The notes under the pieces are model-generated. The model had not been told where the DNA came from. It worked only from the letters and a program-made list of their open reading frames with translations, and ran no database searches. The position numbers were made by a program, and so were the translations under genes. This document shows, one piece after another, positions 2,813-51,052 of a stretch of 55,884 nucleotides of DNA. How positions within the stretch are numbered: position 1 is the first letter of the stretch; the number at the start of each line of letters is the position of its first letter. The DNA comes from Perkinsela sp. CCAP 1560/9 (lineage: Eukaryota; Protista; Euglenozoa: Kinetoplastea), in contig CBFFSA010000050.1 in NCBI GenBank assembly GCA_965644495.1, positions 1 through 55,884 of the forward strand, given 5' to 3'.

Positions 2813-3965
2813 ATGACAACAGAGTTACTTTTCTCATTTTCAACTTCTCGATATGATACTTCTTCCCTGGAAAGACGTTTCACACGCTTTTACCGGGTAT
2901 TGTTTTGATGTGGTTGTAGAGCTGAGCATATCTTTAAAAAGCCCCACGCTTGACGTGTTCTGCGCTCTGGCAATGCTTCATTTGAATCTGACCCATGAAC
3001 AAGCAGCGGCTGTTCTCATTCCTTATGTGGGGGGCCATTATTCAGCACCCCATATATGGAAAAAATTTATTTAGCCGGCCTTGAAGCTTTCTGATGAGGC
3101 TGGCAATCTGGCCGACACAGAGAGAAGATTTTCTATCCGAGAAAAAGCATTTTGCATGGTGTTAAGTATACTCGACGGCGTCCCCATGTACAGCCGTGGG
3201 CCCAGTGAATTATATAACGCGAAAAAGGCCGCGAAGTATTGGACATTTCAAGTTCTTCTCATGATGGACGGTTGCCCTTTGGCCTGGAGTGGACCTTTCG
3301 AGGGTCGGATTCATGACAGCGAATGCTTAGCCCAATCTGACATACCTAGTTTCATGCATCGCCGTGATGAAATGATAATAGCAGACAAGGCATATATCGA
3401 TAACCGTCATTGCTTTTGCCAAGAAGTTGGTCCTGCAATTGACGAAACATTTGATATGGAGTTTCGCCGGATAAGAAACCGTGTAGAAAGGTTTTTTTCC
3501 CATATGGATCAGCACAAGTTGCTGCACTATAATCAGCATCGGAAAGATTTTGCAAGATCTGCTTTCGGGTTGCTCTGGAATGCAGAGTGTACGCACTGGA
3601 AAGTTCACCAGGTAACACTGTACGACGACTCCGTAGAATCTTTGGATTCCACGCATTCCGTCGTTAGAGAATGGGCTTCTCGAGACTTTTGCTCTTGTCA
3701 TTTTCAGAAAGGTGACAAAAAAGATAAAGATGCTATACGAGAGTACCGAGAAGAGGTAAAACAAAATTTACAGCGCACTGGTGTCACAAAAATTGGAAAA
3801 AGCCCTGCTCACGGACGCAAAGGAAGTAAGACGTACAGAAAGTTGACGCAGGCAGAGATGCGTCAGAAGCGAGCTGAGGAGAGCGCTTTGAAGCAAATGA
3901 AGTCAAAGCAGAGAAAGAAGGATCTTGCGCGGGAAAAAAAGGACAACGCCAAATTATTTTCTTAA
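2813..3965 (+). pseudogene. Harbinger/IS5-like (DDE_Tnp_4) transposase with a probable frameshift and an in-frame stop
   Basis: ILDGVP, GPFEGRIHD, IIADKAY, RNRVERFF motifs; TAG at 3072-3074 splits same-frame ORFs 2853-3074 and 3081-3965. Confidence 0.8.
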
Positions 3966-7969: not shown

Positions 7970-8499
7970 CAGGGGGGGTATATTGGGTAGCGATTATACC
8001 CCCCCGGTATACAGGGGGGATCACCAATATCGGGACACCCGTCATTTTTGTGCCATGTGTCCGTTTCACCTGATTTTTGTTGCAAAAGAGAGATCTCGAC
8101 GCGAATATGATCGGAACGACATTTTGCGCGTATTGAAACACACCTAAAAAGGAGGGTGTGTACGACAAAAACGATTTTTTTCAAAATTTGCACATTTGAA
8201 AATGTGGATAAAAATGCCTTAAAAAGCATTGAAAAAGTTATTTAATATGAAATAACCCCTCCGTTACAGTAAAGTAGTTGATAGATGAGTGATAAAAGTT
8301 GCCTTGATAGCCAACAATAGATGATTTTATTGCCGTTCCATCTATTGTTGGTTAAGGGGGGTATAGTATCATCTATTGTTGGCAATCGGCTATTTTTGGC
8401 AAAAAAGTTGCCAACAATAGACGAGCCCCCCCTTTATAAAAAATTCTTTTGTATAGAAAATATCTTTTTCATAGCTGGTATGGGATCCATGCGCAGCGA

Positions 8500-9105
8500 A
8501 CGTCACTTCCTACGTCACTTCCGTAATACTCCCGGAAGCACGTGAAAAGGTTTGCCGTGCGAACTTGCCACGCGGTCTCTCGCCCGTTGTGGACGTCCCC
8601 CAGTTGAAGGGCCACGTTTCGCATGAATTCCAAGGGCGTGGCACCAAGATTGTAGTGCTGCTTCCGTACCCGGTCCTTGATGATGCGATGCGACTCTTCA
8701 GCGGTGTTCGTGTGGTACCCTTGGGAGTTCACAAACTCCACTCTGTGATTCACCCAGAGTAGTGTACGCCCCCCAACAGTCCCTGACCACGGACCTCGCA
8801 CTTGTCAAGTGCGGAAGAATAAAGTTGTGAAGAGTTTCCGAATCTCTTCGGTTCACTAGCTTCCAATGGTTTCTTCCCATTTCTTGACCTCGGATCTCGG
8901 TCACTGTCACAAACCACCGCCCCAGTTTGCGCTGTCGCCTCTCCCGCTGATATTTACATTTTACTATAATTTATAGGTCCGTTATAATAAAGGTTTCATC
9001 AACCTGAATTCGGTAAAATTCATAGTGTTCCATCTGCACTTGAGCAAGGGCTGCGTCCGCCTCCTGCACAGTTCTGCGACCCACCCCTCTATTGTGGCAA
9101 ATCTG
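8500..9105 (-). pseudogene. Merlin / ISXO2 (IS1595-like) transposase remnant
   Basis: IQVDET, KYQRER, VNRRDSETLHNFI, RDCWGAY, VNHRVEFV..GYHTNTAE motifs across frameshifted frames. Confidence 0.8.
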
Positions 9106-15291: not shown

Positions 15292-16861
15292 CAGGGGTGA
15301 AAACTTCCATCTGGGGGGGTCTAAAATTTGTAAAATTTGCTCAATTTTGTAAAATAATAGCGCATTGGAGAGCTCTCGCAGAGTTGTATGTCTTTGGCGT
15401 ATTCGGAACGCTCGACTTGAAAGATTTAATCTAATGACAAAAAAATATTTTTTTTTTCTTGTGAAAGTATGGCAATTTTTTGTTTTTCCCCATTTTATGC
15501 CTCAAAAGCGAGTTCGCTCAAGGACTTCCCGTGGTGTTTTGAGAGCACGCTCCTATGCCTCACCAGGGAAGATTAAGGAAAGTCATAGGATGCTTCTTGT
15601 GGCGGACTTTGAGAAAACAGAGTCTTATTCCCGGACTGCCCAAAATTTTGGTGTCCACGAGGGAACTGTGAAACTCTGGGTGGAAAGATTTAATTGCACT
15701 GGCGACGTGGCCAGTCCATCCCCTACGCGCCAACCTAGGGTCACCACCTCTGATCTTATGAAAGTATCTTTAAAGCTTATTGATGACGCTTATCGTGACC
15801 TTCCTTATGGTATCTCCACTTGGAGCGAGCTCTGGAGAGAGGTAAAGCGACGTGGCTTCATATGTTCACTAACATCCCTAAGGAACATGTTGAAAAACTC
15901 AAAAGAAAAAATTGTGCTCAGAACAGCTTTAAAGACCCCTTTCTTATCTAATAATCATAAGGAGCGCAGAGTGCAATTTGCCACTGAAATGCTACAGTGG
16001 AGCGACGCTGCGCTGGAAAATATTATTTTCTGCGACGAAAAAAAATTTACGTGCAAAAGATCCACCCGACCCACGTACCATTGCCGAAAATCTGACCCCC
16101 CCCAAAGAACAAACAGGGGAATTAGAACCCTATCATGGTGGAGAAGGTACTATGGTTTGGATGGGGTGAGCTTAAAGCATGGGTTTCATTTACACGTCTT
16201 TCCTACCCATGATTCTCAAGGAAACAAAGTAACTGTAAAGGGACAAATTTTTTATGAAGCCATGAAAAAAAGGGGGGGTCTGTTCCAATATTTAAGGAGA
16301 CATCGGGCCACAATAGTGATGGACAATTGCCCGGCACAGAATAAGGCTCGTGCCGCGGCCCAAGAAAAGGGTTATTCTTGGCTCCGATGGCCAGCACGAT
16401 CCCCTGATCTAAACCCCATAGAAAATCTTTGGTCAATAATGGACGGGACAAAGGACCAAATTCAACCCAAAAATCAACAACAATTACTCTCCGCAATTCA
16501 TGATTCCTATGATAAACTTAAGACAGAACAAATATCCAAATTTGAGAATACGCTAAAAAGCTTCAGAAAGCGTTGTAGAATCATTGTAGAAAAGAACGGT
16601 GCACATTGCGGATACTAACAGGGGTTACTAACAATCTTTTTGGGGGGAGAAAACGTTACTTTTTAACTTTTTTGTATCATTTTTCAAGTGACAATTCGAG
16701 TTTTTGACCTATTCGGCATTTGTAGTTCCACTTTGATATGTTAAAAGCTACCAGTACGAAGACATACAACTCTGCGAGAGCTCTCGAATGTGCTATTATT
16801 TTACAAAATTGAAAAGTTTTTACAAATTTTAGACCCCCCCAGATGGAAATTTTCACCCCTG
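15292..16861 (+). mobile_element. Full-length Tc1-like element
   Basis: ~110-bp TIRs CAGGGGTGAAAA..TCCATCTGGGGGGGTCTAAAATTTG; TA TSD. Confidence 0.93.
15497..16618 (+). CDS. Tc1 transposase (DD32E); open frame with an apparently compensated double frameshift
   Basis: MPQKRVRS..., FCDEKKF, MDNCPAQ, WPARSPDLNPIENLW; the conserved GGEGTMVWMG block lies in another frame (~16130-16169). Confidence 0.85.
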   Translation: MPQKRVRSRTSRGVLRARSYASPGKIKESHRMLLVADFEKTESYSRTAQNFGVHEGTVKLWVERFNCTGDVASPSPTRQPRVTTSDLMKVSLKLIDDAYRDLPYGISTWSELWREVKRRGFICSLTSLRNMLKNSKEKIVLRTALKTPFLSNNHKERRVQFATEMLQWSDAALENIIFCDEKKFTCKRSTRPTYHCRKSDPPQRTNRGIRTLSWWRRYYGLDGVSLKHGFHLHVFPTHDSQGNKVTVKGQIFYEAMKKRGGLFQYLRRHRATIVMDNCPAQNKARAAAQEKGYSWLRWPARSPDLNPIENLWSIMDGTKDQIQPKNQQQLLSAIHDSYDKLKTEQISKFENTLKSFRKRCRIIVEKNGAHCGY

Positions 16862-19478
16862 TATGAGCAGCACCGACCCGTTATGTCCACTGAGACAGCT
16901 ATTCAAGTTCTTCAGAAAGACGCCCGTGTGCTCAAAGCAGACGTGCAATACCTAGCGGAACAACTCTGGGGACGAATAAGACGTACTGTTGACGAGTATG
17001 CATTTTTTGGTCTAGCAATTGATGCAGACATCGACCCTGTACTCCGCGAACATGTTCTTGTAGCGGTTCTCTATGTGGGACATCATCAATGGCTCATGCC
17101 ACCGATGCATCACCCGAAGTATGGCGCTTTCAGTGGTAAGGATACCGCCGAAATTGTTATACGTGAATTGCAACACTGTCTGGAAGAAGCTCGTCTATCC
17201 AAACTGGCGTATCTCATAGTCGATGGATGCGCAGTGAACCATGTAGCTGTGAACCATGTTGGTCTCGCTATGAAGCGAGTGGTGTGTTACTAAAAGTATT
17301 TGAGAGCATTGTTCCTCTTGGAGATGCAGATTGGAATGACTTTGTGACAAATTTCCAGGCTTCACATCCCCACATTGTCCTAATTCCGTGCATTGGGCAT
17401 CTTCTCAACAACGTTGCGAAAGACGCATCCAAGGATTATGAAGATATTCTTCTTGTCCAGCTACGAAAGTACTACACTCAAGCATTTCATGGTCAAGGAA
17501 CTCGACGAGCGGAGTATGCTGGTGTTGCTCTTGAAGTTCGACTTACTGAGTTTGACGAAACTTCGCAGTCCGCCGAAGAAACCTTGTTCCAGTGGTATGG
17601 AATACTTGGATCAAAGCAATTGGACGAGACTTCAAAGGAACAAGCACTCGCGACCTTGCGGAATGCCCTAACTTCTCTTTCCAGAGTTATCCCCATGGCA
17701 CAAAAATTGCAAGAGGAAGCTAAGCGTGAACGCGTACGTACGACACCTAAACTTGGTGGTGTCACGCGCTGGATAGCGGATAAATTCACGTGGGTTGAGT
17801 ATATATCAACAGAATTGCCAACAATTGCTAAATTTGTAACCCACATAGTTAGCAAACCTACACGCATTCCTCCTGCGTCCATATGCTCATGCTATGACAT
17901 TCTCAAAGTTCCTGGCGCAGTTGACGCAATCATGTCTGAGGGGAAGGCTTTTTTAAAGCGATTGGAACCTCTGCGTACTTCCCCAAATCTCTTTTCTGAC
18001 GAGAACAACGTCGCCATTGCGACGTGTGTTGAAAGCACACTTAGTATGCTTCGTAAGGAAGGGCCTTCAAATCCTCCACTCGCCGCTGCTCTCCAGCACC
18101 ACGAGAGTCGTCTCAACAAAAATCACGCAACTCCATTTTGGAAAGACGTTCGTTGGCTAAGCCCTACATTCATCATATGGACGACACGAACGCAAAATTA
18201 TGCGCCGATCACTTGTGCTCGAGCAAACGATCTTCTAAAGAATAATGCGCCCATGTTTCACTGCACAGAGGCGGCATGGGAAACTTATGTGACACACGAA
18301 AATTAAAAGTGGCCTGGAGGAGCTTGTACGGACATTGAATGGTGGGAGAAAGTAGGGCGCTACGATTTTCCGGAAGTCTACCCTCTTGCGCAACATTATC
18401 TGTTTGTCCCGCCGGTTGTCACATATTGTGATTCTGTGCTTTCAATGATGACACACAAGTACAATTCTAGGCAAGCGTCCATGACCCGGAAACGTTTCAA
18501 TGCAAATGTTTCTTCACGCCAACAGCAAGTCTGTCGCGGAACTCATGGATAGCCATTTTTAGTATTAAGCAGCCAGGTATCAGCAACCCTGTATAGTATT
18601 TTTAGAGCACACATCCACAGCTCTGTTTATAAAATAATAGTATTAAAATCTCTGTTTGTTTCTATCCTCTCATCGTATCTAAGGGTTTCTGTCGTTTGAC
18701 GTGGTGTCGCGAACATGTAATGTTTATCGGTTTTAGTAGTAAGTGACCAGGGATTAGCAACCCTGTAAAATATTTTTAGAGCACACATCCACAGCTCTGT
18801 TTACTTAATTATCCTCCCATCTTATCTAAGCGTTTCTGTGGTTTACCCTAGTGTCGCGAACATGTAATATACAGGATCGAGGGCTAGTGACTAAATGTGT
18901 ATACAATATGTGTATAAACTTATGCATTACATGTACATGTAAACATAATCTAAAATATATTTAAGTTAATATGTATTATATTTTATTACATTCCGTTACC
19001 ATGATATGCTAGTAGAAGTAGTATTAACTTACTCTTACTAAGTAAGAACTCCTTGTTCTCACCCCTTGTCTTCACCCCTTGTCACCGTGCCGTACCATCA
19101 ACCCTTGATATCACTCCTGTCAGCACCCTCGTTAGTACTGTTTCATGAACCATTTCATGAAAACAGTGGTTCATGAAGTGGTTCATTGGTTCATGAACCA
19201 CCAAGGTATGTAAAATGAAGTTTGCATTTTCTCTTTTTGTGTTTCAAGCGAATGGTCGTGCGTGGTGCTATTATTTTTGAGGAATAATAATAAAAGTGGA
19301 ATAGCGTTTTTAGTCGGTGGCGGATTGTCAACACCAACGCACCGCTTTTCTTTCAAACAAGAAATTTTTTTGTCATTTCCAGTGCACCACTTTTTCCTAA
19401 AAACTATATTCTCATTTCCAATGTACCATCAAATATTCAGAGAAGTACTATATTATAATATCCTTCGAATTCATACTA

Positions 19479-20061
19479 AAGGGGGGGCTCGTTTATTGCT
19501 AACAATTTTTTCGAGCAGTTTTTGCTAACAATAATCGAATGTTAACAATAATCGAACTTTTACCCTCCAATGTTAACATTATACGAGTTGCAATGAAAGT
19601 TCGAATGTTGTTAACAATGGGGGGTATTTGGGCACTCCCTGGAGGTCGCTGAAGGTCACTGGCAGTCGCCGGAGCTATTAACGAGTCTCCAATGACACCT
19701 CTTTAGGAACTACGCAGTTTTCAATTGCCACCCAGTTTCATCTAAAACTGAGTTGTGGGAATCGAAGTGCGATGTCGGGTGAGGTACCGTTTACTTGCCT
19801 TCTCAACGTTTTATCTCTGGATGCTGCCATCGTCGGGCGACTGAAAGTCTGTTGTTTCAATAAAATTGTTTCGCATTTCGTTAAGCGCATCATTTTCCTT
19901 ATCATGAACGCTATAAAACATGACCATAGGGAACAAAAAATTCAAAAGTCACACGAGAAAACCGAAATTAATTCATTGTTAACAATAATCGAATGATAAC
20001 AATAAATGAATTTATTGATTGTTAACAATAAACGAATGTTAACAATAAACGAGCCCCCCTT
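19479..20061. mobile_element. TA-flanked non-autonomous element inserted just upstream of the IS30 ORF
   Basis: TIR AAGGGGGG(G)CTCGTTTATTG(C/T)TAACA, TA TSD, internal TTAACAATAA repeats. Confidence 0.8.
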
Positions 20062-20066
20062 TACAA

Positions 20067-20363
20067 ATGCGCCTTTATTCAAGACTTAGTCTTTACGATC
20101 GTAATCGTATTCAATCACTCTTCGCATCTGGCGAGAGTCGGAGGAGCATAGCTCGCATAATTGGCAAAAGTCACAGCACTGTTTGTCGCGAGTTGGTGCG
20201 TAATGCAAGAAGGGGTCAGCGCTATGAGGGGATGAGAGCACAAAGCATTTCAAAACTTGACAAACCGCAGACGAGCAGAAAAGGAGTTTCGGCGTTCGAA
20301 TCCAAACAATTTGCCACACCGCAGAAAAGGCACACCGCAACAAACTTCAACGAACACATTTGA
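20067..20363 (+). pseudogene. IS30-family transposase N-terminal HTH fragment
   Basis: YSRLSLYDRNRIQSL...SRRSIARIIGKSHSTVCRELVRN...RYEGMRAQ is a typical IS30 N-terminal HTH; no catalytic domain follows. Confidence 0.8.
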
Positions 20364-21818
20364 ATGGGAAATCTCGCGCCCTGCCGCACTTCGACCCTGG
20401 AATGCTTTCCCAATGCACTCGGATTCCTCTGTTGCTGAAACATCTTCGTCGAGCTTGACAAACCACAGAGCATTTTGTAAAGGTGAATAAATTCTTGTCT
20501 AATAAAGTTTCATACTCAAATCTTACACGTGTACTACGCTTTATTTAAATACTCTGGGTAAGTTTTTATGGTGAAAGGAAAAAGGAACGATGTTCGACTA
20601 TGGTGAGGCGCAGAAAAAAGGAACGATGATCGACTATGGTGAAAAAAGTGGTGCGCTGGAGTTGAACATCCGGGGGTTCGTTAAACGCAGTGGTTGTTTT
20701 CAAAATAGAAGTCATGCTGCGCGCTTCCCGTTGAAAACTACTTCCGCGTTTGACGAAGTGACAAAAAAAGAAATTGTTCAGGAAGGATTCCAGCCAAAAC
20801 TAGCCGTTTTTTGGGTGGACATACACCCCCTCTCATAAATAATGATAATGATAATAATAAATTTTCTGAGATTATCATTATTACTATCATTATCATTATT
20901 TATGAACGCAATAAGGGGTGATGAGAAACAAACATACATCTGTGTAGTATATTTTTGTCTACGAAGGGAAATTCTTTGTCTACGAAGGGAAATTCTTTGT
21001 CTACGAAGGGAAAAAGTAAGACAAGATTAAAAAGATTACGGAAAAAATCTCGAGCTGACATGGAGGAGTAACGATGGAATGAAAAGATTTTGATAATTCG
21101 CATTTTTTAGTGAGAAATGGCGTGCCATGGCTCCAAAAAGGGCTATCTTGTCGTGCGGTATGCCCTCCACCCATACCCCCCCCCCCATGGACCCCCCCTA
21201 GAGCCCCCATTTTTTTTCGATTTTGGACCACAGGAGACCGCTTTTAATACTTTTATATTTTTTCTTTCCTCTTTAAACGGTGTTACAGGATGACATACCC
21301 CCCGATACGTTATCTTGTTACAGGAATGTTATGCTGTTACAGGTATGTTAACTTTTATGCCATCATTTCTTTGAAGAATATGATTTACGAACTCAAAAAA
21401 TTATGCGTATTTTACTCCTCAATTTCAGGACAACTACGTCTTCGAAAATACTACTGAATTGTAGAGACATAATGAACAACATGACGTTCAACTGTTCTAG
21501 ATTCCGTGGAAGGAGGAGAGGAGCGTTCTTCAGGAGTAATATCCGTTGGTGGTTTGAAAGAGTAAAGAGGAACGCCAGGATACGGATTTGTTCACGGTTT
21601 TTCATCATTTCTTCGGGACTAAGTCTATTGATACACATCTGCTTTTCAGTATTTCATGACCACCGCGAAAGTACACGTACTTCCAGGAACGCCTCCGTGC
21701 TGTAACAGAGAAGTGCAACGGAAGCTTACAAAGACATAAAAGTATTCCTTTGGTGAGAGTGTTTTCGGATTTAAAACTTGTTTGCGAAGAAATTATTCTT
21801 ACGGCCTAATTTGCAGTA

Positions 21819-23182
21819 TATTTAAAATAAACCCCCGCTCACGAATAAGTGACTCCCCCTTATTTTTAGCACAGGGGGGCGTGGGTGGGTTATCATACCA
21901 CTTTTTCGTTCAAAATTTCGAGATCTGCACGTTCCCGCTGTTTTCAGCTCATTTTAAAACTTTAAAATTTAGTCAAAAAAAATAATTGGTTTTTCAACTT
22001 TTTTTTCCAAAAATGACCAAATCACCATATCAGCTCCCAAAAGGGGAGCTTACGGATAGTGGCAAGGTTCTTCTGAAGATGAGACAGGGAGAAGGTGTTC
22101 CGATAAAACAATTATCCCGTGATTTTAACGTCTCTAGAAGGATAACCAAAAAATATCTGAACGAAAAAAAATGTAGTGGGGAATACACTTTGAGTCCTGT
22201 GACCATTAAAAAAATCGAATCTCGCAAAAAGAAAATTGAAAAGATATTGGCTCCTCTCGACCCCGCTGGGGTACCAAAATTCAATTCTTCAAGGCGTATA
22301 AACGGCCAAATGTGTAAAAAAGGTATAAAAGTTTCGCAAAGCAATGTAAAGCGAGATCTACCATAGCTGGATTACAATTATGCCGCTCGGCCAGTATGCC
22401 AAGGGCTTACCGAACGACAAAAGCAAAGAATAGTTCAATTTGCTTTGAATTACAAATTGGATACTGCCCGTGTTATTTTTACGGACGAAAAGATATTTGA
22501 TACCAACGATAGCAGAAGACACATGTGGGTAAAGCGCGGTCAAAAAGCAGCCCCGCGTCAAAAAGTACGTTGGGCACCAAGATGCCAAGTTTGGGGTGCT
22601 GTAGGAGTGGGCTGGAGGTATTTGGTTACTCTACGAAATGACACATTTATTACAAGTGAGATGTACATAGAAACATTAAAACAGGTAGATTTCCCCCCTA
22701 ATAGTGTATTTCAACAGGATGGGGCAACGGCACATACTGCCCGTGCCTCCAAAGAGTATATTGAGAATCGAATGAGTGATGTTTTAAGAAACTGGTCCCC
22801 CAACTCGCCCGACCTTTCCCCAATAGAAAACGTCTGGTCTATGGTCCAAGAGGCGGTAGACGAACAAACGCCATCGGACAAACCTTCACTTATCCGATGT
22901 GTACGTAAAGCATGGTCTTCTTTAACGCAAAAAGTGATCGACAAAACAGTATTAAGTTTTGATTCTCGACTTAAGGAGTGTATAAGATTGGAGGGCGAAA
23001 AAGTGAAAAAATGGTAATTCTTCTCTAAATTGTGCGTATTCGTTTCTTTTTGTCCCATTTCTTCACGCGCAAAGTCCTTGTGTTGAGATCTGCAAAATGC
23101 AACAAAAATCAGCTCAAACGGACATTTGTACGAAAAAAAAGAGGGGGGTCACTTTTCGTGAGCGGGGGTTTATAATTTAATA
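21819..23182 (+). mobile_element. Tc1/IS630-like element (DD35E)
   Basis: TIR core TAAACCCCCGCTCACGAA..AGTGAC..CCCC at both ends in TA context; exact ends uncertain by a few bp. Confidence 0.85.
22013..23017 (+). pseudogene. Tc1/IS630 transposase (DD35E), frameshifted
   Basis: IFTDEKIF, QVWGAVG, QQDGATAH, WSPNSPDLSPIENVW; N-terminal part in another frame. Confidence 0.88.
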
Positions 23183-23567: not shown

Positions 23568-24590
23568 GAGGGGCTGCGGGTACTTCGACCGAGACCGCAC
23601 CGAGACCGCACCGAGACCGCGGTTCGTATTTTCGGTGGGGAGAGATAGAAAAACAGCCAAAAGTTTACATTTGTTTTTATTTTTAAGTGGAATTTCGAAT
23701 TCGGTGTACGCTTCTAGCTATATTTTTCTTTGTTTCTTTCTCTGTATCATTTTCATCCTTTTTACTAACAACAGCGCGTTTTTCTTTTCCCGTAAACTTT
23801 TCTCCTAAATTTTTATGACTATCGAGAGCAATGACGCATTGCAAGAGCGATTGACTGCTCTTGAGCCTGAGACAAGTGCCGAAGACAAACTCTTCGATGT
23901 CATCAAGGCTTCGACGATCCGGGTCTTTACGAAGAGGCCCGACGTTTTCTCCAAGCCAACGTTTGGAGATAATTTTCTCCAGCCACGTTTGGAGATAAGC
24001 AATGTAGAGCTCAGTAGTAAAATGGATGAAATCGCAGGGCGCGTGTCACGCACGATGGACAACTTCCTACATGTTGCACGCTCTGTGTGTGGCATTGACT
24101 TGACCTCGTGCATCGTGACTCGCGTCCTGTTCCACTTGGTTGACCGCCGGGGCCATCTGCTTCTGAGCGTCCGCCCCCGGAGCGCGTACTTCCTTGGAGA
24201 GGCGACCGCCGATCTTGAAGCGTACCTTCAAGAAGACCCTCTCTTTTCCCCCCATCGCCAAGGTGAAGTGGGCGACTTTGTGGACAGCGTGTGACGCTCT
24301 GTTTCCGGGAAGCGGTCTCGCGTTTGCCAGCAGTGGCGTCAGCGCAAGCGGACCGCTTCTCGTCAAAATGAATCAAGCAGCGGGGCTGAAGTCTCACCAC
24401 CACCCCCATTTTCGATTCGATTAGTTTTTTCATTGAGATTTCCTCTCCAACAATGTCCGGATTCATGTAGCCTCGCCTTCGCCTTCTACTCCCCTGCCCC
24501 CACCCCCCACCCATTCCACACTTTCTGTTCTTGCACTGAGATAAGTTCGTACGCCGCACCGAGACCGCACCGAGACCGCGCAATTGCTAA
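23568..24590 (+). mobile_element. Harbinger-like element remnant with a broken ORF (23815-24424)
   Basis: GAGGGGCTGCGGG left end; direct ACCGAGACCGC repeats at ~23588-23620 and ~24555-24580; right tip missing. Confidence 0.55.
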
Positions 24591-24682
24591 TACCGTTACC
24601 CCCCTTACTTCGCCTCCCCCCTTACTTCACCACATTTAGTCACTGGACGAGTGGTGAAGTAAGAGGGGAGGTCAGATTATTC

Positions 24683-24803
24683 CCCAGGCAACTTACCACC
24701 TCTTTATGCAGCCGGAGGGGTGCACTGCAACCGACCGTTGCATCGGGGTAAGGCGAGGCAGAGCCACGCCCAGTGGTCTTCAAGGGGGGACACAGATGGC
24801 GCA
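24683..24803 (+). repeat. Internal fragment of the structured non-coding element
   Basis: Aligns by eye to ~48554-48672 (CCCAGGCAACT...GAGGCAGAGCCACGCCCAGTGGT..TCAAGGG). Confidence 0.75.
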
Positions 24804-25539
24804 CAAAGAACGATGCACAAAGGTTCTGGGTGCAATTTTCTTGGTGAAGACGACGCCGTCATACCGGGATTTTAAACCACAGTCCGGTTTAACATTCCGG
24901 GGGGGAATGTTAACGGCTACAGGAATACTACGTAGCTGCAGGAATGATAACGTTTGAAGATTGTCTTGGATTCGTCGACGCAACGGGTTGGTAGTAGCAC
25001 GTTGTTGCCGCCTTGTACTAACGAAAACAGGTAGAGGACTTCGGCCTCGAAACTTCCATATCTATCTGTGAAGGGTCTGGCTTGCCAGTGACCCATCGGA
25101 GCAATCCGGAGTTTATCTTTCGTCAATTTTTTCTTCCTTAGCTTCTTAATATTTTTTGCTTCAATCGGAAGATACAGAAATCATGTTACTGGAATTGTTA
25201 TTCTGCAGGACTTAAACGAGGGTTTCGGCATGTAATACACGTTAATAATACATTGTGCTTAGAGGGGTGACTCTGGGTGGGAGCGCCTAGGATCCCGCCT
25301 AGAATTTTTTCCAAATTTTTTCGTGAAAATTCCGAACTTGGCGGACCCATCCTGCGGATACCAGGGGGGGTCACCCCCACGTGGGGGTGGAAAATTTGTT
25401 CACTTTTTTTAATAATCGAGGGTACAGCGGTAGTTAAACAACCATTGCAATACACCTAACGTTAGCACCGTCCAACCGGTGGGCTTTTCTTGGTCGAATG
25501 AGCAGAGCGTTGTAGTATCGTACTGCGTCAGGGACGCCA

Positions 25540-25695
25540 CTCGCACCTTTATAACGCATAAAACTCGCACCCTTATAATGCATAATGCACCCTGATAACG
25601 CATATTGTCCCACTGATAATGCATATTGTCCCACTGATAATGCATAAAAACTCGCACCCTTATAACGCATAAAACTCGCACCTTTATAATGCATA
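25540..25695. repeat. Left subterminal tandem array of the IS30 element
   Basis: 20-25-bp units containing ATAAYGCAT, inverted relative to the right array. Confidence 0.85.
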
Positions 25696-26019
25696 TTTTT
25701 TGCGAGCCCCTCAAAAAAAAAGTGACCCCCCCTCGAAAAAGAAATCGACCCCATGAAAAAAAAGTGGAGGGGGGGAAATAAGTTAAAAAGAAAAAAAGTG
25801 GAGGGGAGAAACAAGTTAAAGAGCTCTAGTATTTCATTCCTGCTCCCGGTGAGGCCCCGGAGTTGCGAGACTCCTCCATACCCGACAACTACCACCTCCC
25901 CCCCCCTATTTAGCGTGGGTCGCGCGAGCGACCCCTGATAAATGGTGGGAAGGTGGTAGTTGTTTTGGGGAATATGAGAGGCCGAACGCACGGAGGGGCC
26001 GGCCGGGCCACTGAGTCTG

Positions 26020-26390
26020 ACGTTAGTGGGAAGCAATTTGCGAAGCCCAACTGTTCCATCATACCCGACCCCTAGGAAAGCCAAGACTTTGTTTACCTCG
26101 TCTGCAAGACAAAAATGTGTGTCGTTAGTGGGAAGCAATTTGCGAAGCCCAACCTTTCCATCATACCCAACCCCTAGAAAAGCCAAGACCTTGTTTACGC
26201 GTCTGCAAGACAAAAATGTGTGTCGTTAGTGGGAAGCAATTTGCGTAGCCCAATTTTTCCATCATACCCAATCCCTTACAAAGCCAAGGCGACTGAAGCC
26301 CAACTTTTCTGACGGAGCCCAACTTTTCTGACGGAGCCCAACTTTTCCACCATACCCAACCCGTAATAAAGCCAAGACCTTTTGAAGCCC
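26020..26390. repeat. ~100-bp tandem repeat (about 3 copies) 3' of the IS30 ORF
   Basis: GTTAGTGGGAAGCAATTTGCG(A/T)AGCCCAA...CCATCATACCC...AAAGCCAAG repeated. Confidence 0.8.
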
Positions 26391-26536
26391 ATACACGTAA
26401 AGAAAACGACATTCAATGCAAGAACGCACACGAAATGCAAATATCCAATGCAAACAAGGCCCGCGCAGTTTCATAGGAAATTAGTGTTTTATGACACAAT
26501 ATTTGAAGGAAGAAGCCCACGCACACGAAAAGAGAT

Positions 26537-27526
26537 TTAAGATTCCTGCGAGCTGTCCAAGATAATTTGCAGTCGAATTTTCCGTAATTTTTGCACAAAC
26601 TCAGATGGGGACTGGTCTTGGAGCACCACTTTCGGTCGAGCATTGATATTGCTGGATACGGAATCAAGGTCTGCTTGGGATATATTACTGAAAGGATGAG
26701 ACTTTGGGTAGAAATCTCTGACGACGCCGTTGAAAATTTCGACACCACCCTTTTCCCAGCTCGCGTACGGTTTACAAAAGTACGACGAGCAATTAAGGGA
26801 ACGATTTACGCTCTCGTGCTTCGCGAATTCCGTTCCATTATCATATGTGAGTGTCCGTACCAAAAAGCCTTGAAGGGCGCTGGTGATAGTCTCTGCTACA
26901 AGAGTCGATTTCTTGCATGATATCTTTTTCAGGATCCCGAAACGACTTTTGCGCTCAACCAGGGTAAGAAAGTATCCACTGTGGCGTGTACCTTCCATTA
27001 GATCACACTCCCAATCACCGTATCGTTCCCGATCGTTAACAATGCTGGGCCGCATATCAATATCTGTACGATTAGGGATGCTGGTACGATTAGTTCCACG
27101 ACGACGGCGTTGTCCACGAATTCCCCCCCGACGGAGGCAACTCTCCAAGTTTTGACTCTTATTCCGACTAATAAAACCATAAATTGCCTTCCGGGAAATG
27201 CTCACACCTTCTTTGCGCAAAGTAACAGATATCTGTTGAGGGCTAAAGCGCCGACGTAACAGAGATATGACACTCTCTTTGATGTCTCCTTCAATTTTGC
27301 TTGCACGGGACTTCCGTTTACTCATTGCTTGGTTGAGTGTTCGTTCAGCCCGCTTCGCGTTGTACACACCATCCCGATCTCCACGTGCCAGTTCTTGACT
27401 AAGAGACGACTGATTTACTTTCAGTTTTGAGGCAATTTGTGCTTGCGAAAAGTTTTCTTGATTGTGGAGAACCTCAATAAGTTTACGATCTTCTGAATTA
27501 ATACGTTTTCTAGATGTTTGACACAT
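26537..27526 (-). CDS. IS30-family DDE transposase, intact
   Basis: N-terminal HTH, FSPQQIS, AIYGFI, IDMRP..VNDRERYGDWECD, LVERKSRF, TYDNGTEF, YFCKPYASWEKGGVE, INARP; D-D33-E spacing. Confidence 0.95.
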   Translation of the reverse strand: MCQTSRKRINSEDRKLIEVLHNQENFSQAQIASKLKVNQSSLSQELARGDRDGVYNAKRAERTLNQAMSKRKSRASKIEGDIKESVISLLRRRFSPQQISVTLRKEGVSISRKAIYGFISRNKSQNLESCLRRGGIRGQRRRRGTNRTSIPNRTDIDMRPSIVNDRERYGDWECDLMEGTRHSGYFLTLVERKSRFGILKKISCKKSTLVAETITSALQGFLVRTLTYDNGTEFAKHESVNRSLNCSSYFCKPYASWEKGGVEIFNGVVRDFYPKSHPFSNISQADLDSVSSNINARPKVVLQDQSPSEFVQKLRKIRLQIILDSSQES

Positions 27527-27552
27527 GGTGCAAGAAAGACAAAAAAAATATT

Positions 27553-27860
27553 ATCCGGTTACATTATGCATTATCAGGTTACATTATGCGTTATCAGGTT
27601 ACATTATGCATTATCAGGTTACATTATGCGTTATCAGGTTACATTATGCGTTATGAGGTTACATTATGCGTTATCGGGTTACATTATGCATTATCAGGTT
27701 ACATTATGCATTATAAGGGTGCGAGTTACTATGCATTATAAGGGTGCGAGTTTTATGCGTTATCAAGGGCACAATATGCGTTATCAAGGGTACAATATGC
27801 GTCATCAGGTTACATTATGCATTATAAGGGTGCGAGTTTTATGCGTTATAAGGGTGCGTG
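27553..27860. repeat. Right subterminal tandem array of the IS30 element
   Basis: TTATCAGGTTACATTATGC(A/G) 20-mer about 8 times, then mixed 20-24-bp variants. Confidence 0.9.
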
Positions 27861-28993
27861 TGCCGACTCTGCTAGCTCACCCGCTAAAACTCCACTATCC
27901 CAGATTGTTGGTCCGGGACGGTCCTGGCTGGAGAAACGAAGTTTTTTGCGCCTCCACTCCTCCGGAGATGGGGTGGGATTCGACCACAGCTTGCACGAGT
28001 GCAGTCCCACCTCCACCGAGGTTACAAGGTTGGCACGCGAGAAAAGGTGGTGCTAACAACGTATTCCCGGAGATGGACATGCCACGCCGTCTTGCAACCC
28101 CGAAGGGGTTAAACCGGAATAGGAATGGACAAATCCCTGCAGCTAGCTGGAAGTCCTTACTTCGGAAGGCTAGGGTCGCCACACCCCATCACCGACGACA
28201 GCCCAACGCCAGTCTCCCTTTCTAACTCTTTGTCATGTTAGCCCAGCATGTTCCATCCAAGGGACATTGAGGATTCCGGACCTCTTTGAGAAAAAAACAT
28301 TTTACCAAGTCGGATCTCCGTAGAAGTTTACTGGGAGCGCCTGGGAGCGCCTGGGAGCGCCCGGGCAGGAGTCACCCCTCTTAGATTCGTTCCCCATTTC
28401 TAATTCAGAACGGTTTTCTTCCATGTCAATTTCATCATCGCTTTGGTCATAAAGTTGCGTCACAGCGTCTTGTAGTTCTAAAATTTAAATTGGTGTTCAA
28501 TAGTTTATGTTCTGCGACATCATTTAAATTTTACGATGTAAGAAATGTTCATGAGGGGAAAGTTAAAAACGCATGGGACATCGTAGACAAGCTAAAAGAG
28601 ACATAAAATATAGAATGTGCAACACGAGGTATTACAACACTCAAGAAAAGGAAATTATGCTCAATGCCGATAGCATAGTGTACTTCAATAATTTGAGGAT
28701 TTCCGAGAGAACTATAATTTGATCGAACTTTGAATCACTTCTTCACCCCCCTTACCTCACCACCCCCCTTACTTCACCACAAAGTACGGGTTTTGGCCCA
28801 AAAAGTGGGGACTAAGTAAGCGGGGGTAACGGTAAGTCCTTCGAGGGTATTTCAATCTATTTTTATCGATCTACACACTTCCTCTTCATCCTTTGCTTTC
28901 CTTTTCCATCCTCTCCCCTCCACTAACAACCCTCTTTTTACCCTTTTCCACCCTCTTTTTTACACCGTTCCCCCCCCGACACGCCACAAAAAA

Positions 28994-29686
28994 ATGTTCC
29001 TCCTCCACCCCATGCGCGACGTCGTCTGTACCCTCCCCCCCCATTTCACCCCCGCCTCCCCCCCTGACGCCCCCTCCCCCCTCCCCACCGCGGCCCTGCT
29101 GGACGCCCTCACCCGGCGCTACTGCGGCACCGTCGTTCCTTCCCTCGGTCTCGTGCTCGCGGTGCCCCGTGTCACCGGGGCCGGCCCCCCGCACGTGACC
29201 CCCACCGGCGGGGGGGCGTGGACGGCGGTGCGGTTCCTCCTCGCGGCCTTCGCCCCCGCCCCCGGGGCCGCGCTCTCGGGGGTGGTCGCGGGGCAGTCCC
29301 CGGGGGGGGGGCTGAGGCTGGTGCCCGGGGGGTGGGCGGGGGGAGGGGGGGAGGCCCCGGTGCGGATGGTGGTGAAGAGGGGGGGGCTACCGCGAGGGTG
29401 GTGGTGGCGGGAGGGGGGAGGGGGAGACACGAGTGACGGAGGGGGGAGGGAAGGGGGGTGGGGGGACGGGGGTCGTAGGGTCGTGGTGGGGGAGGTGGTG
29501 GGGGTGAGGGTGGTGGAGGTGGTGTATTTTAGGAGAAAGGGGGAGGGGGAGGGGGGGGAGAAAGGGGGGAGGGGAAGGGGTGGGGGGAGAGTACCGTTCC
29601 GACCGGGGATTTGTGATGATCCGGAGTTTGAGACGTCGGTGAGGGAGGTGTGGGGGATGGAGGTGAGAGGGGAGTTGATTGTGTAG
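28994..29686 (+). CDS. RPC25: RNA polymerase III subunit RPC25/RPC8 (Rpb7 family), compositionally distorted
   Basis: MFLL..MRDVV..PP.F, RRYCGTVVPSLGLVLAV, GGAWTAVRFLLAAFAP..G..LSG.V..QSP.G, GEVVGVRVVEV.Y follow the RPC25 motif order. Confidence 0.8.
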   Translation: MFLLHPMRDVVCTLPPHFTPASPPDAPSPLPTAALLDALTRRYCGTVVPSLGLVLAVPRVTGAGPPHVTPTGGGAWTAVRFLLAAFAPAPGAALSGVVAGQSPGGGLRLVPGGWAGGGGEAPVRMVVKRGGLPRGWWWREGGGGDTSDGGGREGGWGDGGRRVVVGEVVGVRVVEVVYFRRKGEGEGGEKGGRGRGGGRVPFRPGICDDPEFETSVREVWGMEVRGELIV

Positions 29687-36789: not shown

Positions 36790-39778
36790 CACCCCTGTTC
36801 CACTTTTTTGCCCGCAATTGATTGAGCGCACCAGATGAGCTTTTCGAATAATGTTTTCAGCAAAGTACGTAGATGATTCGCCAGAGCGTGTAAAAAATGC
36901 GTTTTTCACCCCTTGTTTCAGCTGTGGTGACTGAGCAAAAAAGGTTCGTTTTTTCCACGTTTTTCAGTAACAAATTGCATTTTTTTTTGTTTTTTTAGGT
37001 TATTTTACCACAATTTATGTATACTTCTATCTTCCATTTCTCTTTTGAAATGTCCTCATTATTTATTCTATGAACAATACTGCGTTTTTAAGACTCCTTC
37101 GTTTTATTAATAATATTTCTTACTAGTAATGCACAATCGTCACCCAAGTTCTTTATCCCTTGAAGATTTAGTTCGCTCTGGCGAATTGATCCAACTTCAG
37201 AGCGGGAGATATTTTTTATGCGACCGAGATCAGGATGCGTTGCCTACCTTGACCCCTCCACTATCAGATTCTTTCATCTCCTCAGAGCTTCATCTTTCTG
37301 TTTCCTCTTCTTCGGTACCACCTGATACTCCTGTCGAGGGTGATTTAACATTCTTCGTTTCACCTGTGGTTGCTTCTCCTCCTGTCGGAAATCCTCCAGA
37401 CCTTCCTCTCTTAGCATCCGACTTTTCTGATACAGAAAGTGACGACGTATCTTGTACTTCCTCGATTGTTGAGGACAACTGGAGCGAAGAAAAGGGCGTC
37501 GAAGCGTATGCAGCTTCCCTAGGTCATATGAGGGAGGAAGGTGAATCTTTTGAATCATTCGTGACTAGGATGCAAAATTCGGAACCCCCTATGGAGCAAA
37601 CAGGGGAGAAAATGAACCTGATTGACCTCATTACGACTTCTCATGCAGCAGGAGTGGAAGTGAATCTTGTCGAGCACATCACGACTTCACATGGCGTTTT
37701 GCCGACGGAAACGGAAGAAAAATTGAGAGCCGAGTTGAGAGACAGTCGAGACCTTTGTCGGGTTAAAGCCAAAGAATGTACCTCTCTGAGAAAGAAAATC
37801 ACAGCGATGGAGAAAAAGCTCGTATCTTCTCAAAATGAACGAGCGGATATCGTGAAAATGATTAGTGAATTGCGTGAAAGGTGCAGCATCGCTGAAATTG
37901 AAAAAGACAAGGCTGTTCAGTTAAAAGAAGGAGTTACCCTGGAATGCGAGAAAAGAGCCGCTAAAGAAATTAAACTCCTAAATATCTTGAGCTACCTCCA
38001 GCAACGACCCGTCGAAGAAGCACCTTCTTCTGATGAAGGGGATTCAGTTATACGGCGTGGGCGTCCCTTAAAGCGCAAGCGTGGAAGAAAACCGCGAGAT
38101 ACCGATTCTCTACCAATCCTAGTCCACGGAAAAGGGGCGCTCAATGAGGAAGACAAATTTGCCTTCAAAAAGATTCAATCAACGGGACGAGTGCAACGTT
38201 GGGAGTTGGGCTACATGTTTTCTTTGGAGCGCACGACATGTCGGCGGCTCTGGAATTCTCCTCTCAAAGTTTCCACCGGAGAGGAGCAGGGTGAAAGCAA
38301 TTCCATTGTGAAATGGGAACACTACGATGCGGCTACTGACCTTTTGCCGCAAGCAATTTCTATGTACGGCTCGTACCGTACAATTACAGATATTCAATGC
38401 GCGTACGTGAAGCTGACAAACTTCAAGATCGTCCCTTCTCGCAAGAAGGTACGCCAATTATTATTGCACCATAAGTATCACTACGCACCGAAAGTTCATA
38501 CTCTTTGTCTGAGTGTATCAAAGATGGAAGCCCGAGTTCGCTTTGCACAAGAAATGCTGCAAGAGCAGGACAATCGAGACCAAAATTTTTTTTCGCGCCT
38601 AATTTTTTCTGACGAGGTTATGATACAGGCCGGTGACTCATCCAGAAAAACCTGGCAACACCCGGATTCCCCAGTATCCAAATCCCGCACGGACCATCCA
38701 CCTCAAATAATGTTATGGGGCGCTATGGATGTCGACGGGAATTTCCTCCATCACTGGTGTGAATTCAAATCTTTTTACGACGAATATACTCGAAACGGGG
38801 GTCAAGAAGAAATTCCTCCAAACAAAGGGCTCGGAACATTGTATTATCGAAGTTGCATTTTGCAAAAGACGTATCTTCCGTGGGAAAAGATAGGAAACAA
38901 AATTTTTATGGACGATAACGCGCCTGGGCACAAGGCCATACTAACAATCGCCTGGTGGAAATCTCATCCCCGGGTTGAGGCTCTGCGGCTTTGTAAAGAG
39001 GTGAAGAGTGCTCAGACTCTGCCGGATCTAAACCCAATAGAAAATCTCTGGAGTATTCTCAAGCTGTACAAGAATAAACATAGACCAAATACCGTGAGTG
39101 AAATAAGGGAAGTATGCGATCGATACTTGAAGTCTCCTGCTTGTCGGAAGGAATGTTATAAACTGCACCGTACTTTTAAAAAACGAATGGAAATGGTTAT
39201 TTTGTATGGAGGAAAGAAGATCCCTTACTGAAATACTACAGTGAATCTTTCATCCACTTTAGTATTTCGATAGAAATTATGCAATTTTCTGCAAGTTTTA
39301 GTTCAGAGGAACATGTTTAAGTATTTGCATCTCTGTGAAAACCGCGTCTGCCTTTGACAAAATTTTCAAAAAAAAAAAAATTCTTTTTCTTTTCGATGTT
39401 CTTCTTTCAGAGATGACACGTCTTTTGACAAGACACGAGCTTTGATGATGAAATCTCCCCCACCTAAACCAAAGAGGAGGCTCTCACACTCTCCCAGGAT
39501 GGCCTGCAGACTCCTCGGATCTGCCTTTCCTATCAAACCGAGTTATTTTACTTGAAGATGAGATTTTTTGAAAAGTTTCACAGGATTTTTTTCACTGCCC
39601 AGATGAGCAAATTCTCAGATTTTTGCCCTTCCTCCCACGTTTATCGCATGCTGTTTAACTATAGGCATATTTTTCCCTGGTAGGGCATCACCTAATTATG
39701 CCGAAAAACCACTCTTTAGACCCAAATAGAAACTTTTTTTTATCACATAATACCGGGCAAAACAGGGGAACGGGGGTG
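36790..39778 (+). mobile_element. Tc1/IS630-like element with intact long ORF (innermost layer)
   Basis: 25-bp TIRs CACCCC(T/C)GTTCC(A/C)CT(T/G)TTTTGCCCG, TA TSD. Confidence 0.85.
37129..39231 (+). CDS. 700-aa Tc1/IS630-like transposase (DD41E) with a long N-terminal extension
   Basis: IFSDE, IMLWGAM, FMDDNAPGH, PDLNPIENLW, YGGKKIPY; first ~330 aa acidic/Ser-Pro, coiled coil and RRGRP..RGRKP. Confidence 0.9.
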   Translation: MHNRHPSSLSLEDLVRSGELIQLQSGRYFLCDRDQDALPTLTPPLSDSFISSELHLSVSSSSVPPDTPVEGDLTFFVSPVVASPPVGNPPDLPLLASDFSDTESDDVSCTSSIVEDNWSEEKGVEAYAASLGHMREEGESFESFVTRMQNSEPPMEQTGEKMNLIDLITTSHAAGVEVNLVEHITTSHGVLPTETEEKLRAELRDSRDLCRVKAKECTSLRKKITAMEKKLVSSQNERADIVKMISELRERCSIAEIEKDKAVQLKEGVTLECEKRAAKEIKLLNILSYLQQRPVEEAPSSDEGDSVIRRGRPLKRKRGRKPRDTDSLPILVHGKGALNEEDKFAFKKIQSTGRVQRWELGYMFSLERTTCRRLWNSPLKVSTGEEQGESNSIVKWEHYDAATDLLPQAISMYGSYRTITDIQCAYVKLTNFKIVPSRKKVRQLLLHHKYHYAPKVHTLCLSVSKMEARVRFAQEMLQEQDNRDQNFFSRLIFSDEVMIQAGDSSRKTWQHPDSPVSKSRTDHPPQIMLWGAMDVDGNFLHHWCEFKSFYDEYTRNGGQEEIPPNKGLGTLYYRSCILQKTYLPWEKIGNKIFMDDNAPGHKAILTIAWWKSHPRVEALRLCKEVKSAQTLPDLNPIENLWSILKLYKNKHRPNTVSEIREVCDRYLKSPACRKECYKLHRTFKKRMEMVILYGGKKIPY

Positions 39779-49277: not shown

Positions 49278-51052
49278 TATAAAAAATTCTTTTGTATAGA
49301 AAATATCTTTTTCATAGCTGGTACGGGCTCCATGCGCAGCGAACGTCACTTCCTACGTCACTTCCGTAATACTCCCGGAAGCACGTGAAAAGGTTTGCCG
49401 TGCGAACTTGCCACGCGGTCTCTCGCCCGTTGTGGACGTCCCCCAGTTGAAGGGCCACGTTTCGCATGAATTCCAAGGGCGTGGCACCAAGATTGTAGTG
49501 CTGCTTCCGTACCCGGTCCTTGATGATGCGATGCGACTCTTCAGCGGTGTTCGTGTGGTACCCTTGGGAGTTCACAAACTCCACTCTGTGATTCACCCAG
49601 AGTAGTGTACGCCCCCCAACAGTCCCTGACCACGGACCTCGCACTTGTCAAGTGCGGAAGAATAAAGTTGTGAAGAGTTTCCGAATCTCTTCGGTTCACT
49701 AGCTTCCAATGGTTTCTTCCCATTTCTTGACCTCGGATCTCGGTCACTGTCACAAACCACCGCCCCAGTTTGCGCTGTCGCCTCTCCCGCTGATATTTAC
49801 ATTTTACTATAATTTATAGGTCCGTTATAATAAAGGTTTCATCAACCTGAATTCGGTAAAATTCATAGTGTTCCATCTGCACTTGAGCAAGGGCTGCGTC
49901 CGCCTCCTGCACAGTTCTGCGACCCACCCATCTATTGTGGCAAATCTGGCCGGTGCACGTCTGATTCGCGATGTCGGTTCAGATAGGTAGCAGAATGCTG
50001 GGAGTCAGATGGCTGCGCATCGATATGTACGGCTCGAACTTGCCTTTCTTAATTCTGCAGGCATTTCGAGAGCCAGACTCTCGGTGGTTGAAAATCTGGA
50101 TACTGTATGAGATTTCCCAGGAACGAATGCTATAATGGCCTTTGGCATCGCCATACAGCGTGGCAACGTCCAGATCATTTCGGTCGCCACGTTTCAATGG
50201 CGGCAAACGGGTATCTTATAGGGAGTAATTATTCATAAATAACATTACTTTATTATTACTGTCCCCCCTCTCCTTAAGCGCACCCGATCAGACCCCCCCG
50301 TTTAAGCGCACATAGAGTTGAAGGAAAGATCCCGGCGCCGCGAAGCGGCGCCAAATGTTTTTTTACGGAGTGATTCAGACCTCCCCGTTTAAGCGCACTT
50401 TTCGCGGAAAACGAGGTGCGCTTAAACGGGGGGGGACATTTGAAAATGTGGAATAAAATGTCTTAAAATGTGGATTAAAAAGCATTGAAAAAGTTATTTA
50501 GTATGAAATAACCCCCTTTACACTTTCGTAACTCTTCTAACCGTTTTGGGAGGCTCTTCAGAGTCTTCTCTAGGATATCCCGCTTTTCGGTTAGGAGATA
50601 TTCAATAGCCTTGGGTATGGCCTCTCGCAAGTCATGCGTATTTTTCGGACGCAAAGAACTATGAATGTAGTCATCCATGATTGACCACAAGTTTTCTATC
50701 AAGTTTAAGTCAGGTGACTTAAGGCCAATCAATAGTGAGGGCCAATCAATAATGTTTGGGCCTGCTTGCAATCCCGCACGACGGGCTTGCCCATGACCCG
50801 GTGCAATAAAAGAGAATTGTATCCTTTAGTGGACAATATTAACGGGATTGGCACAATTTTTACATAAATTTGCATATTTTTTGAAGATGTTTTTTATTTT
50901 TTTTATACTATTTTTTACAAGTATGTTTAAATAGGCGCAAAATGTCGTTCCGATCATATTCGCGTCGAGATCTCTCTTTTGCAACAGAAATCAGGTGAAA
51001 CGGACCCATGGCCCAAAAATGGGAGGTGTCCCGATATTGGTTATCCCCCCTG
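49114..51052 (+). repeat. Near-identical duplicate of 8271-10805 (Merlin + RLE + MITE + Tc1 cassette), lacking ~650 bp of the Tc1 interior
   Basis: Collinear sequence with scattered substitutions; ends exactly at the Tc1 TIR (CCCCTG|TA). Confidence 0.95.

Follow-up and report, generated by a model that had tools for sequence, protein, structure and literature searches.

Our analysis points to a resident, diversified and recently mobile lineage of IS30, a family of prokaryotic insertion sequences (ISs), in the nucleus of the kinetoplastid Perkinsela sp. CCAP 1560/9, and we put the probability that this lineage is real at roughly 0.88. One complete member lies in the window, by which we mean the whole 55,884-nt stretch of contig CBFFSA010000050.1 that was analysed and in which positions are given (Table 1). 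An initial annotation of the window had already proposed an intact IS30 transposon at this site, transposed within the nucleus and possibly still active.

The transposase open reading frame (ORF) of the window element is uninterrupted over 329 codons, as annotated, and its product scores 239 bits against the NCBIfam IS30 profile NF033563 (cut-off 80), while falling far under the cut-offs of the IS481, IS3 and IS21 profiles. The HTH_38 match (Pfam; residues 5-49, E 1.5e-5) is slightly below the Pfam cut-off, and the Pfam rve match is also below its cut-off. The motifs GDWECD and TYDNGTEF are both present, and each residue of the catalytic triad D175, D229 and E263, with the spacing D229-x33-E263, is conserved in 400 of the 401 outside sequences aligned. 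No solved structure related to the transposase was found. The element ends are inverted repeats with 48 of the first 51 bp identical, close to the ~50 bp first described, and the match extends to ~120 bp at 87% identity; these terminal inverted repeats (TIRs) are longer than their bacterial counterparts, mismatched at the tips and extended by arrays. Judged by profile, triad, TIRs, target-site duplication (TSD) and tree, the element is a member of the IS30 family.

The boundaries of the element were set by unoccupied copies of its target, of the kind the initial annotation had envisaged. The target is a miniature inverted-repeat transposable element (MITE), and three paralogous copies of it (on contigs C3, C5 and C10) run continuously through the insertion point with a single GAC. 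The same empty joint, with 2,332 bases skipped, is present in three sequencing runs (X1-X3). Because the empty MITE copies carry one GAC, the duplication of GAC in the window is genuine and the element ends are exact. The target MITE is itself nested in an outer MITE, which has TA at both sides and of which ~20 uninterrupted copies are found among the top-scoring matches. This order, outer MITE, middle MITE, then IS30, was correctly recognised from the start and still holds, but the description of the two layers needs amendment. In intact copies of the middle MITE the left end is repeated internally, ~190 bp further in. The window copy has lost its true left end, together with ~5 bp of the outer MITE, and has 3 bases (25111-25113) in their place. 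Since that end is deleted, the TTA at 25259-25261, originally taken for a TSD, belongs to the internal repeat. Both layers are non-coding, and the labels 'Harbinger-like' and 'pogo-like' they were given derive only from end sequences and TSD type.

The window element is not a single copy. Searching the 21-Mb, 110-contig genome assembly with the window protein gave 117 matches on many contigs, and the complete copies have distinct flanks and TSDs; the IS30 profile gave 96 matches, 55 of them above its cut-off, and nine family proteins score 163-253 bits against NF033563. These sequences fall into ~11 subfamilies in two clades, clade I holding subfamily A, to which the window element belongs, and seven others, and clade II the remaining three. 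Full-length clade I members are 51-74% identical to one another in amino acids, and the two clades only 38-45%, about as distant from each other as from bacteria. The elements have a single ORF and measure 1.42 kb in clade II and 2.3-2.5 kb in clade I, the closest bacterial relatives being 1.21 kb long; those of clade I have 7-22 upstream copies of the terminal motif and 2-7 copies at their downstream tip. Clade II ends number 14 left and 13 right across the genome, and a search with the end pattern of clade I gave 71 matches (0 in a control), which include paired derivatives of 0.9-1.7 kb. The TSD survey covered 14 complete copies, later copies being known by coordinates only. All 14 have exact 3-bp TSDs, comprising 13 different triplets, where the chance expectation is 1/64 each, and the insertion-site bias is weak (purine at -1 in 11 of 14, pyrimidine at +1 in 13).

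Table 1. Features of the window discussed in the text.
Feature	Position	Strand	Remarks
Second IS30, clade II deletion derivative	19319..20674	+	GGT TSD
Outer layer, TA-duplicating MITE	24593..28832		~950 bp when empty; many copies
Middle (target) layer, Harbinger-type MITE	25114..28380		intact length ~975 bp; TWA TSD; left end repeated internally at 25262
GAC target duplication (3 bp), left copy	25533..25535	+
Complete clade I (subfamily A) IS30 element	25536..27864	-	2,329 bp; ends set by empty sites
Downstream end	25536..25695	+	tip GCCAC and 7 inverted copies of the 20-bp TIR motif of the upstream end
Non-coding hairpin module	25841..26047	-	~200 bp; long hairpin, z = -5.5
Tandem copies (2.6) of 101-bp unit	26021..26288	-
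IS30 transposase ORF	26537..27526	-	329 aa; N-terminal helix-turn-helix (HTH), Arg-rich linker, D175/D229/E263
Upstream end	27551..27864	-	tip GGCAC, then the inner TIR motif (20 bp) in ~13 tandem copies, which may form a transposase-binding array
GAC target duplication (3 bp), right copy	27865..27867	+
Host ORF, weakly RPC25/RPC8-like	28994..29686	+	Pfam E 0.008; PDB RPC8 E 0.09-0.4

A second IS30 in the window is ~93% identical to intact clade II copies and internally deleted, and a 583-bp TA-flanked MITE (19479-20061) has inserted into it directly before the ATG. Nesting between IS30 and eukaryote-type MITEs is thus reciprocal. Together with the empty targets and the exact TSDs at different sites in 14 of 14 copies, this shows that transposition happened within this nucleus, as the initial annotation had held. 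The lineage has inserted with a 3-bp stagger many times and has been under selection for a working enzyme. Codon comparisons show the subfamilies to have diverged under purifying selection on the transposase: subfamilies A and B differ with a synonymous divergence (dS) of ~2.0 and a non-synonymous divergence (dN) of 0.16 (dN/dS ~0.08), other pairs being synonymously saturated.

The clearest sign of recent activity, as read from sequence identity, is a recent burst in the 1,424-bp clade II subfamily, in which five copies are 99.4-99.8% identical and have open frames. The window copy also inserted fairly recently; it is 97.5% identical to a second full subfamily A copy (2,327 bp, with an ATT TSD) in an assembly from the European Nucleotide Archive (ENA). 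It has private changes at conserved positions, among them Q44, where 390 of the 401 outside sequences have K or R, and I264 (N264I), adjoining the catalytic E, where 397 have N or H. Contigs from runs X1-X3 carry the conserved residues at these sites, and the changes may be mutations or assembly errors. Because such positions are otherwise conserved, the window copy is probably impaired and would require enzyme from a sister copy, so that the suggestion of continuing activity fits the 1,424-bp subfamily better. Two further copies are of note: one of subfamily E (L006:1411-2430) has an open frame in which K replaces the catalytic E, and at C20:103428-108246 the N-terminal stretch (~90 codons) of an IS30 transposase gene is repeated in tandem ~10 times, at a spacing of 0.5-0.6 kb.

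The assembly includes two small-subunit (SSU) rRNA genes. That on contig C11, which bears IS30 copies, is of kinetoplastid type, with sequence signatures of that group; that on contig C58 is AT-rich and amoeba-like, with no IS30 match listed on the contig. All close protein matches that were traced come from ENA assembly ERZ24900291 and are ~99% identical to loci of this genome. On one contig of that assembly, from the same organism, an IS30 copy lies among long intronless same-strand genes. It is 5 kb from a long trypanosomatid-type uS17m that matches 7aor, 6hiv and 7ane, which are trypanosomatid mitoribosomes, at E ~1e-105 to 1e-108. A mago nashi 9 kb away has the same sequence as a Paramoeba atlantica protein (MMETSP0151/EukProt). 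Since the genes are intronless and on one strand, and the related amoeba P. pemaquidensis is intron-rich while its Perkinsela is intron-free (PMC5601477), the host is most likely the kinetoplastid, the Perkinsela endosymbiont of Paramoeba atlantica. The window contig is linked to this genome through shared repeats and has no marker of its own. At 21 Mb, the assembly is over double the published size of the Perkinsela CCAP 1560/4 genome (9.5 Mb); it is rich in DNA transposons and has at least one amoeba-type ribosomal DNA contig. A separate second species as the source of the ENA matches was considered and rejected, all those above 55% fitting loci of this genome at 92-100%.

Searches of protein sets of 5.8 billion and 1.84 billion sequences, GTDB and JGI returned nothing outside this organism above 51% amino-acid identity; the best outside matches are at 43-51%, and the named ones are mostly from Verrucomicrobiota. 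GTDB, JGI metagenomes, IMG/VR and plasmids gave at most 54% on a partial match, at most 45% over the full length, or nothing. The Verrucomicrobiota IS30s are 1.21 kb long, start GG(C/T)GG, end CC and have 3-bp TSDs. In quick maximum-likelihood trees, which left out the named ISfinder references, each Perkinsela clade has support of 99-100 by the Shimodaira-Hasegawa-like approximate likelihood ratio test (SH-aLRT), and both stand at the base of a Verrucomicrobiota-type IS30 group with support of 95-97, nested among IS30 homologs. Clades I and II may be sisters, their pairing having a support of only 70, and none of the ~400 nearest outside sequences groups within either clade. Tips are asymmetric in both clades, with GG at one end and GGG or GGC at the other, whereas all ten bacterial elements checked have GG...CC. 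Because both clades share this asymmetry, unseen in the ten bacterial elements, a single origin is mildly favoured. We suggest that a bacterial IS30 subgroup, now mostly found in Verrucomicrobiota, was the source of one or two old transfers, which would have been followed by radiation into the ~11 subfamilies and shorter non-autonomous derivatives. Clade II, compact and with bacteria-like ends, and clade I, with its long arrays, look like two stages toward a eukaryotic architecture.

An IS from a co-cultured bacterium, present as contamination or through chimeric assembly, could give rise to such findings in principle, and the culture is indeed mixed, the assembly includes an amoeba-type ribosomal DNA contig, and the ENA assembly has no record of the exact window protein. 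This reading is barely credible, however: copies are spread over numerous large contigs in every state of decay, their TSDs differ, they are nested with host MITEs in both directions, and one locus is reproduced at >99% in the second (ENA) assembly. Contamination by a bacterium is excluded, since the best outside match is at most 51% and copies occur among kinetoplastid genes on many host contigs, and the window element is not near-identical to any bacterial IS. A subtler alternative is that the subfamilies diversified in unsampled amoeba-associated bacteria and entered the nucleus many times. The saturation of synonymous sites between subfamilies, the depth of the split between the clades and their modest joint support would all fit, but the absence of outside sequences within either clade, the derived clade I architecture, which is missing from bacterial relatives, and the tip asymmetry common to both clades make repeated entry quite improbable.

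For the resident lineage, a mechanism can be proposed from the family to which it belongs. The HTH would bind the motif repeated at the termini, and the ends would be joined by the DDE core to targets with a 3-bp stagger. By the copy-out-paste-in route described for IS30 (PMC9333248), one end, once nicked, would be joined to the opposite end, replication by the host would release a circle, and the circle junction would integrate. By analogy, we lean somewhat towards retention of this route, with host repair completing the copy. The lineage could instead now move by cut-and-paste, like most eukaryotic DDE elements, its subterminal arrays marking the shift. The length of clade I elements, their motif arrays and their paired-end derivatives are compatible with this, as is the failure to find an end-to-end junction in the assembly, although circles would escape assembly in any case. 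Set against it are catalytic motifs that match the bacterial ones, an unchanged TSD length and the lack of a true excision footprint, so that we regard cut-and-paste as unlikely. The only candidate footprint, an empty site in run X2 with three extra bases, was rejected as a Hi-C artefact because the extra bases equal the product of GANTC fill-in and religation and the same run has a GATC-type ligation junction.

Perkinsela uses polycistronic transcription and trans-splicing (PMC5601477, PMC11613528), and the transposase mRNA would probably arise by read-through polycistronic transcription, the T-tract upstream of the ATG serving for trans-splicing. The start context of the window ORF, a T-tract followed by GCACC-ATG, is as first described, and in subfamilies B, D and F an AG lies 1-12 nt ahead of the ATG. 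The lack of a Shine-Dalgarno sequence, cited in the initial annotation, is uninformative, and we rejected it as a sign of adaptation, the closest bacterial relatives showing none at the usual distance either. Matches to a sigma-70 promoter were at chance level (6, compared with 3.9 +/- 2.2), and the spliced-leader core pattern gave six scattered matches and no array. The hairpin module of the window element is 88-95% identical across clade I subfamilies although their synonymous sites are saturated. It has at least 47 genomic copies, of which 22 of 47 are in register with a matched right end and about half are away from any matched IS30 end. It may act as a signal in cis, or it may be a repeat that recombination has spread; an Rfam scan of the window element gave no match. 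The 101-bp tandem unit has a 22-mer core with 167 exact matches genome-wide, including long arrays on contig C19, and its read depth far exceeds that of the transposase ORF.

Several observations weigh against a resident, recently mobile lineage. The junctions of the window element are not bridged under a 31-base rule, the best contig reaching 30 bases inside the element, and a second host species was not seen, all close ENA matches being from the same organism. The phylogeny comes only from quick trees. A search of the assembly with the exact clade I pattern turned up neither a circle nor an end-to-end junction, and a transposase transcript or MMETSP protein was looked for and not seen. Subfamilies A and C also lack an AG between T-tract and ATG, the nearest being 125-202 nt upstream, which leaves their splice site unexplained. 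While these points leave the resident lineage well supported, the most far-reaching version of it, a first natural eukaryotic IS30 superfamily that arose by a single old transfer, is still active, uses the bacterial circle route in the nucleus and relies on the hairpin module as a cis-acting signal in expression or transposition, is doubtful as a whole.

Elsewhere in the window, the ORF 1.13 kb from the element, annotated as an RNA polymerase III subunit gene, lies at about the distance given, but its likeness to RPC25/RPC8 is weak. This ORF has an extreme switch from C-rich to G-rich sequence, a Gly/Pro-rich product and low read depth in the runs. Tc1/IS630-type transposase ORFs (DDE_3) occupy 335-1447, 15365-16618, 22445-23017 and 37129-39231, one of them encoding 700 amino acids with a long N-terminal extension. 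A Harbinger/IS5-type DDE_Tnp_4 ORF at 3081-3965 could be an autonomous partner for the MITE that duplicates TWA. Two near-identical short ORFs (8469-8801 and 49312-49644) have no Pfam match and share a Merlin/IS1595-like HTNT motif. The interval 23584-24580, 997 bp between direct repeats with a 159-aa ORF inside, resembles another repeated element.

IS30 elements are usually compact, 1.0-1.3 kb with a single ORF. The closest known system is the short (~318 aa) prokaryotic IS30 subgroup in Verrucomicrobiota metagenome-assembled genomes (e.g. MEM7792019.1), which has the same profile, DD33E core, single N-terminal HTH, 3-bp TSD and GG tip, and whose left end clade II retains as GG(C/T)GGAT. Unlike that subgroup, the Perkinsela elements are nuclear, at most 51% identical in protein, 1.4-2.5 kb long and asymmetric at the tips; clade I adds repeated terminal motifs and the hairpin module, and non-autonomous derivatives are many. 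E. coli IS30 belongs to the same family and presumably shares its single-strand-bridge chemistry, but has 2-bp TSDs and 26-bp inverted repeats and directs its insertions to palindromic hot spots or to its own ends (PMC9333248); the Perkinsela elements have 3-bp TSDs, flanks with only the weak purine/pyrimidine bias and no end-to-end junction in evidence. Engineered IS30 fusions are reported, in work known here through its citation in PMC3413126, to have inserted into plasmid targets in zebrafish embryos, and our literature searches found no natural counterpart of IS30 insertion in eukaryotes. Neither did they find a published eukaryotic IS30, Repbase and most subscription journals being outside their reach, and a 2023 summary of prokaryote-eukaryote IS pairs does not include the family (PMC10045372).

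Other IS-derived DDE transposons have likewise settled in eukaryotes, among them IS481EU, IS3EU/GingerRoot, ISL2EU and Merlin, and IS481EU is also confined to one protist group (PMC10045372). By profile and ends, the Perkinsela lineage is neither IS481EU nor IS3EU: its proteins reach 58-67 bits against the IS481 profile (cut-off 224) and the window protein 31 bits against IS3 (cut-off 160), its tips are GG rather than TG..CA or TA..TA, and its TSDs are 3 bp rather than 4/15/25, 6 or 8 bp. Trypanosomatids have no DNA transposons (PMC12278014). Merlin, another IS-affine DNA transposon found in kinetoplastids, is known from copies in Perkinsela CCAP 1560/4 that have no TIRs or TSDs and were judged inactive, and from remnants in Bodo saltans (PMC8101967); the Perkinsela IS30 copies are instead complete and some are near-identical. 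If our reading is correct, they would constitute the first set of DNA transposons in a kinetoplastid that are both complete and recently mobile, and would make it testable whether copy-out-paste-in, which depends on host replication and repair, can run in a nucleus. IS30 would also join the short list of IS families that have crossed into eukaryotes, with its donor subgroup still recognisable, adding one more superfamily, from one species, to the IS-derived eukaryotic superfamilies already known.

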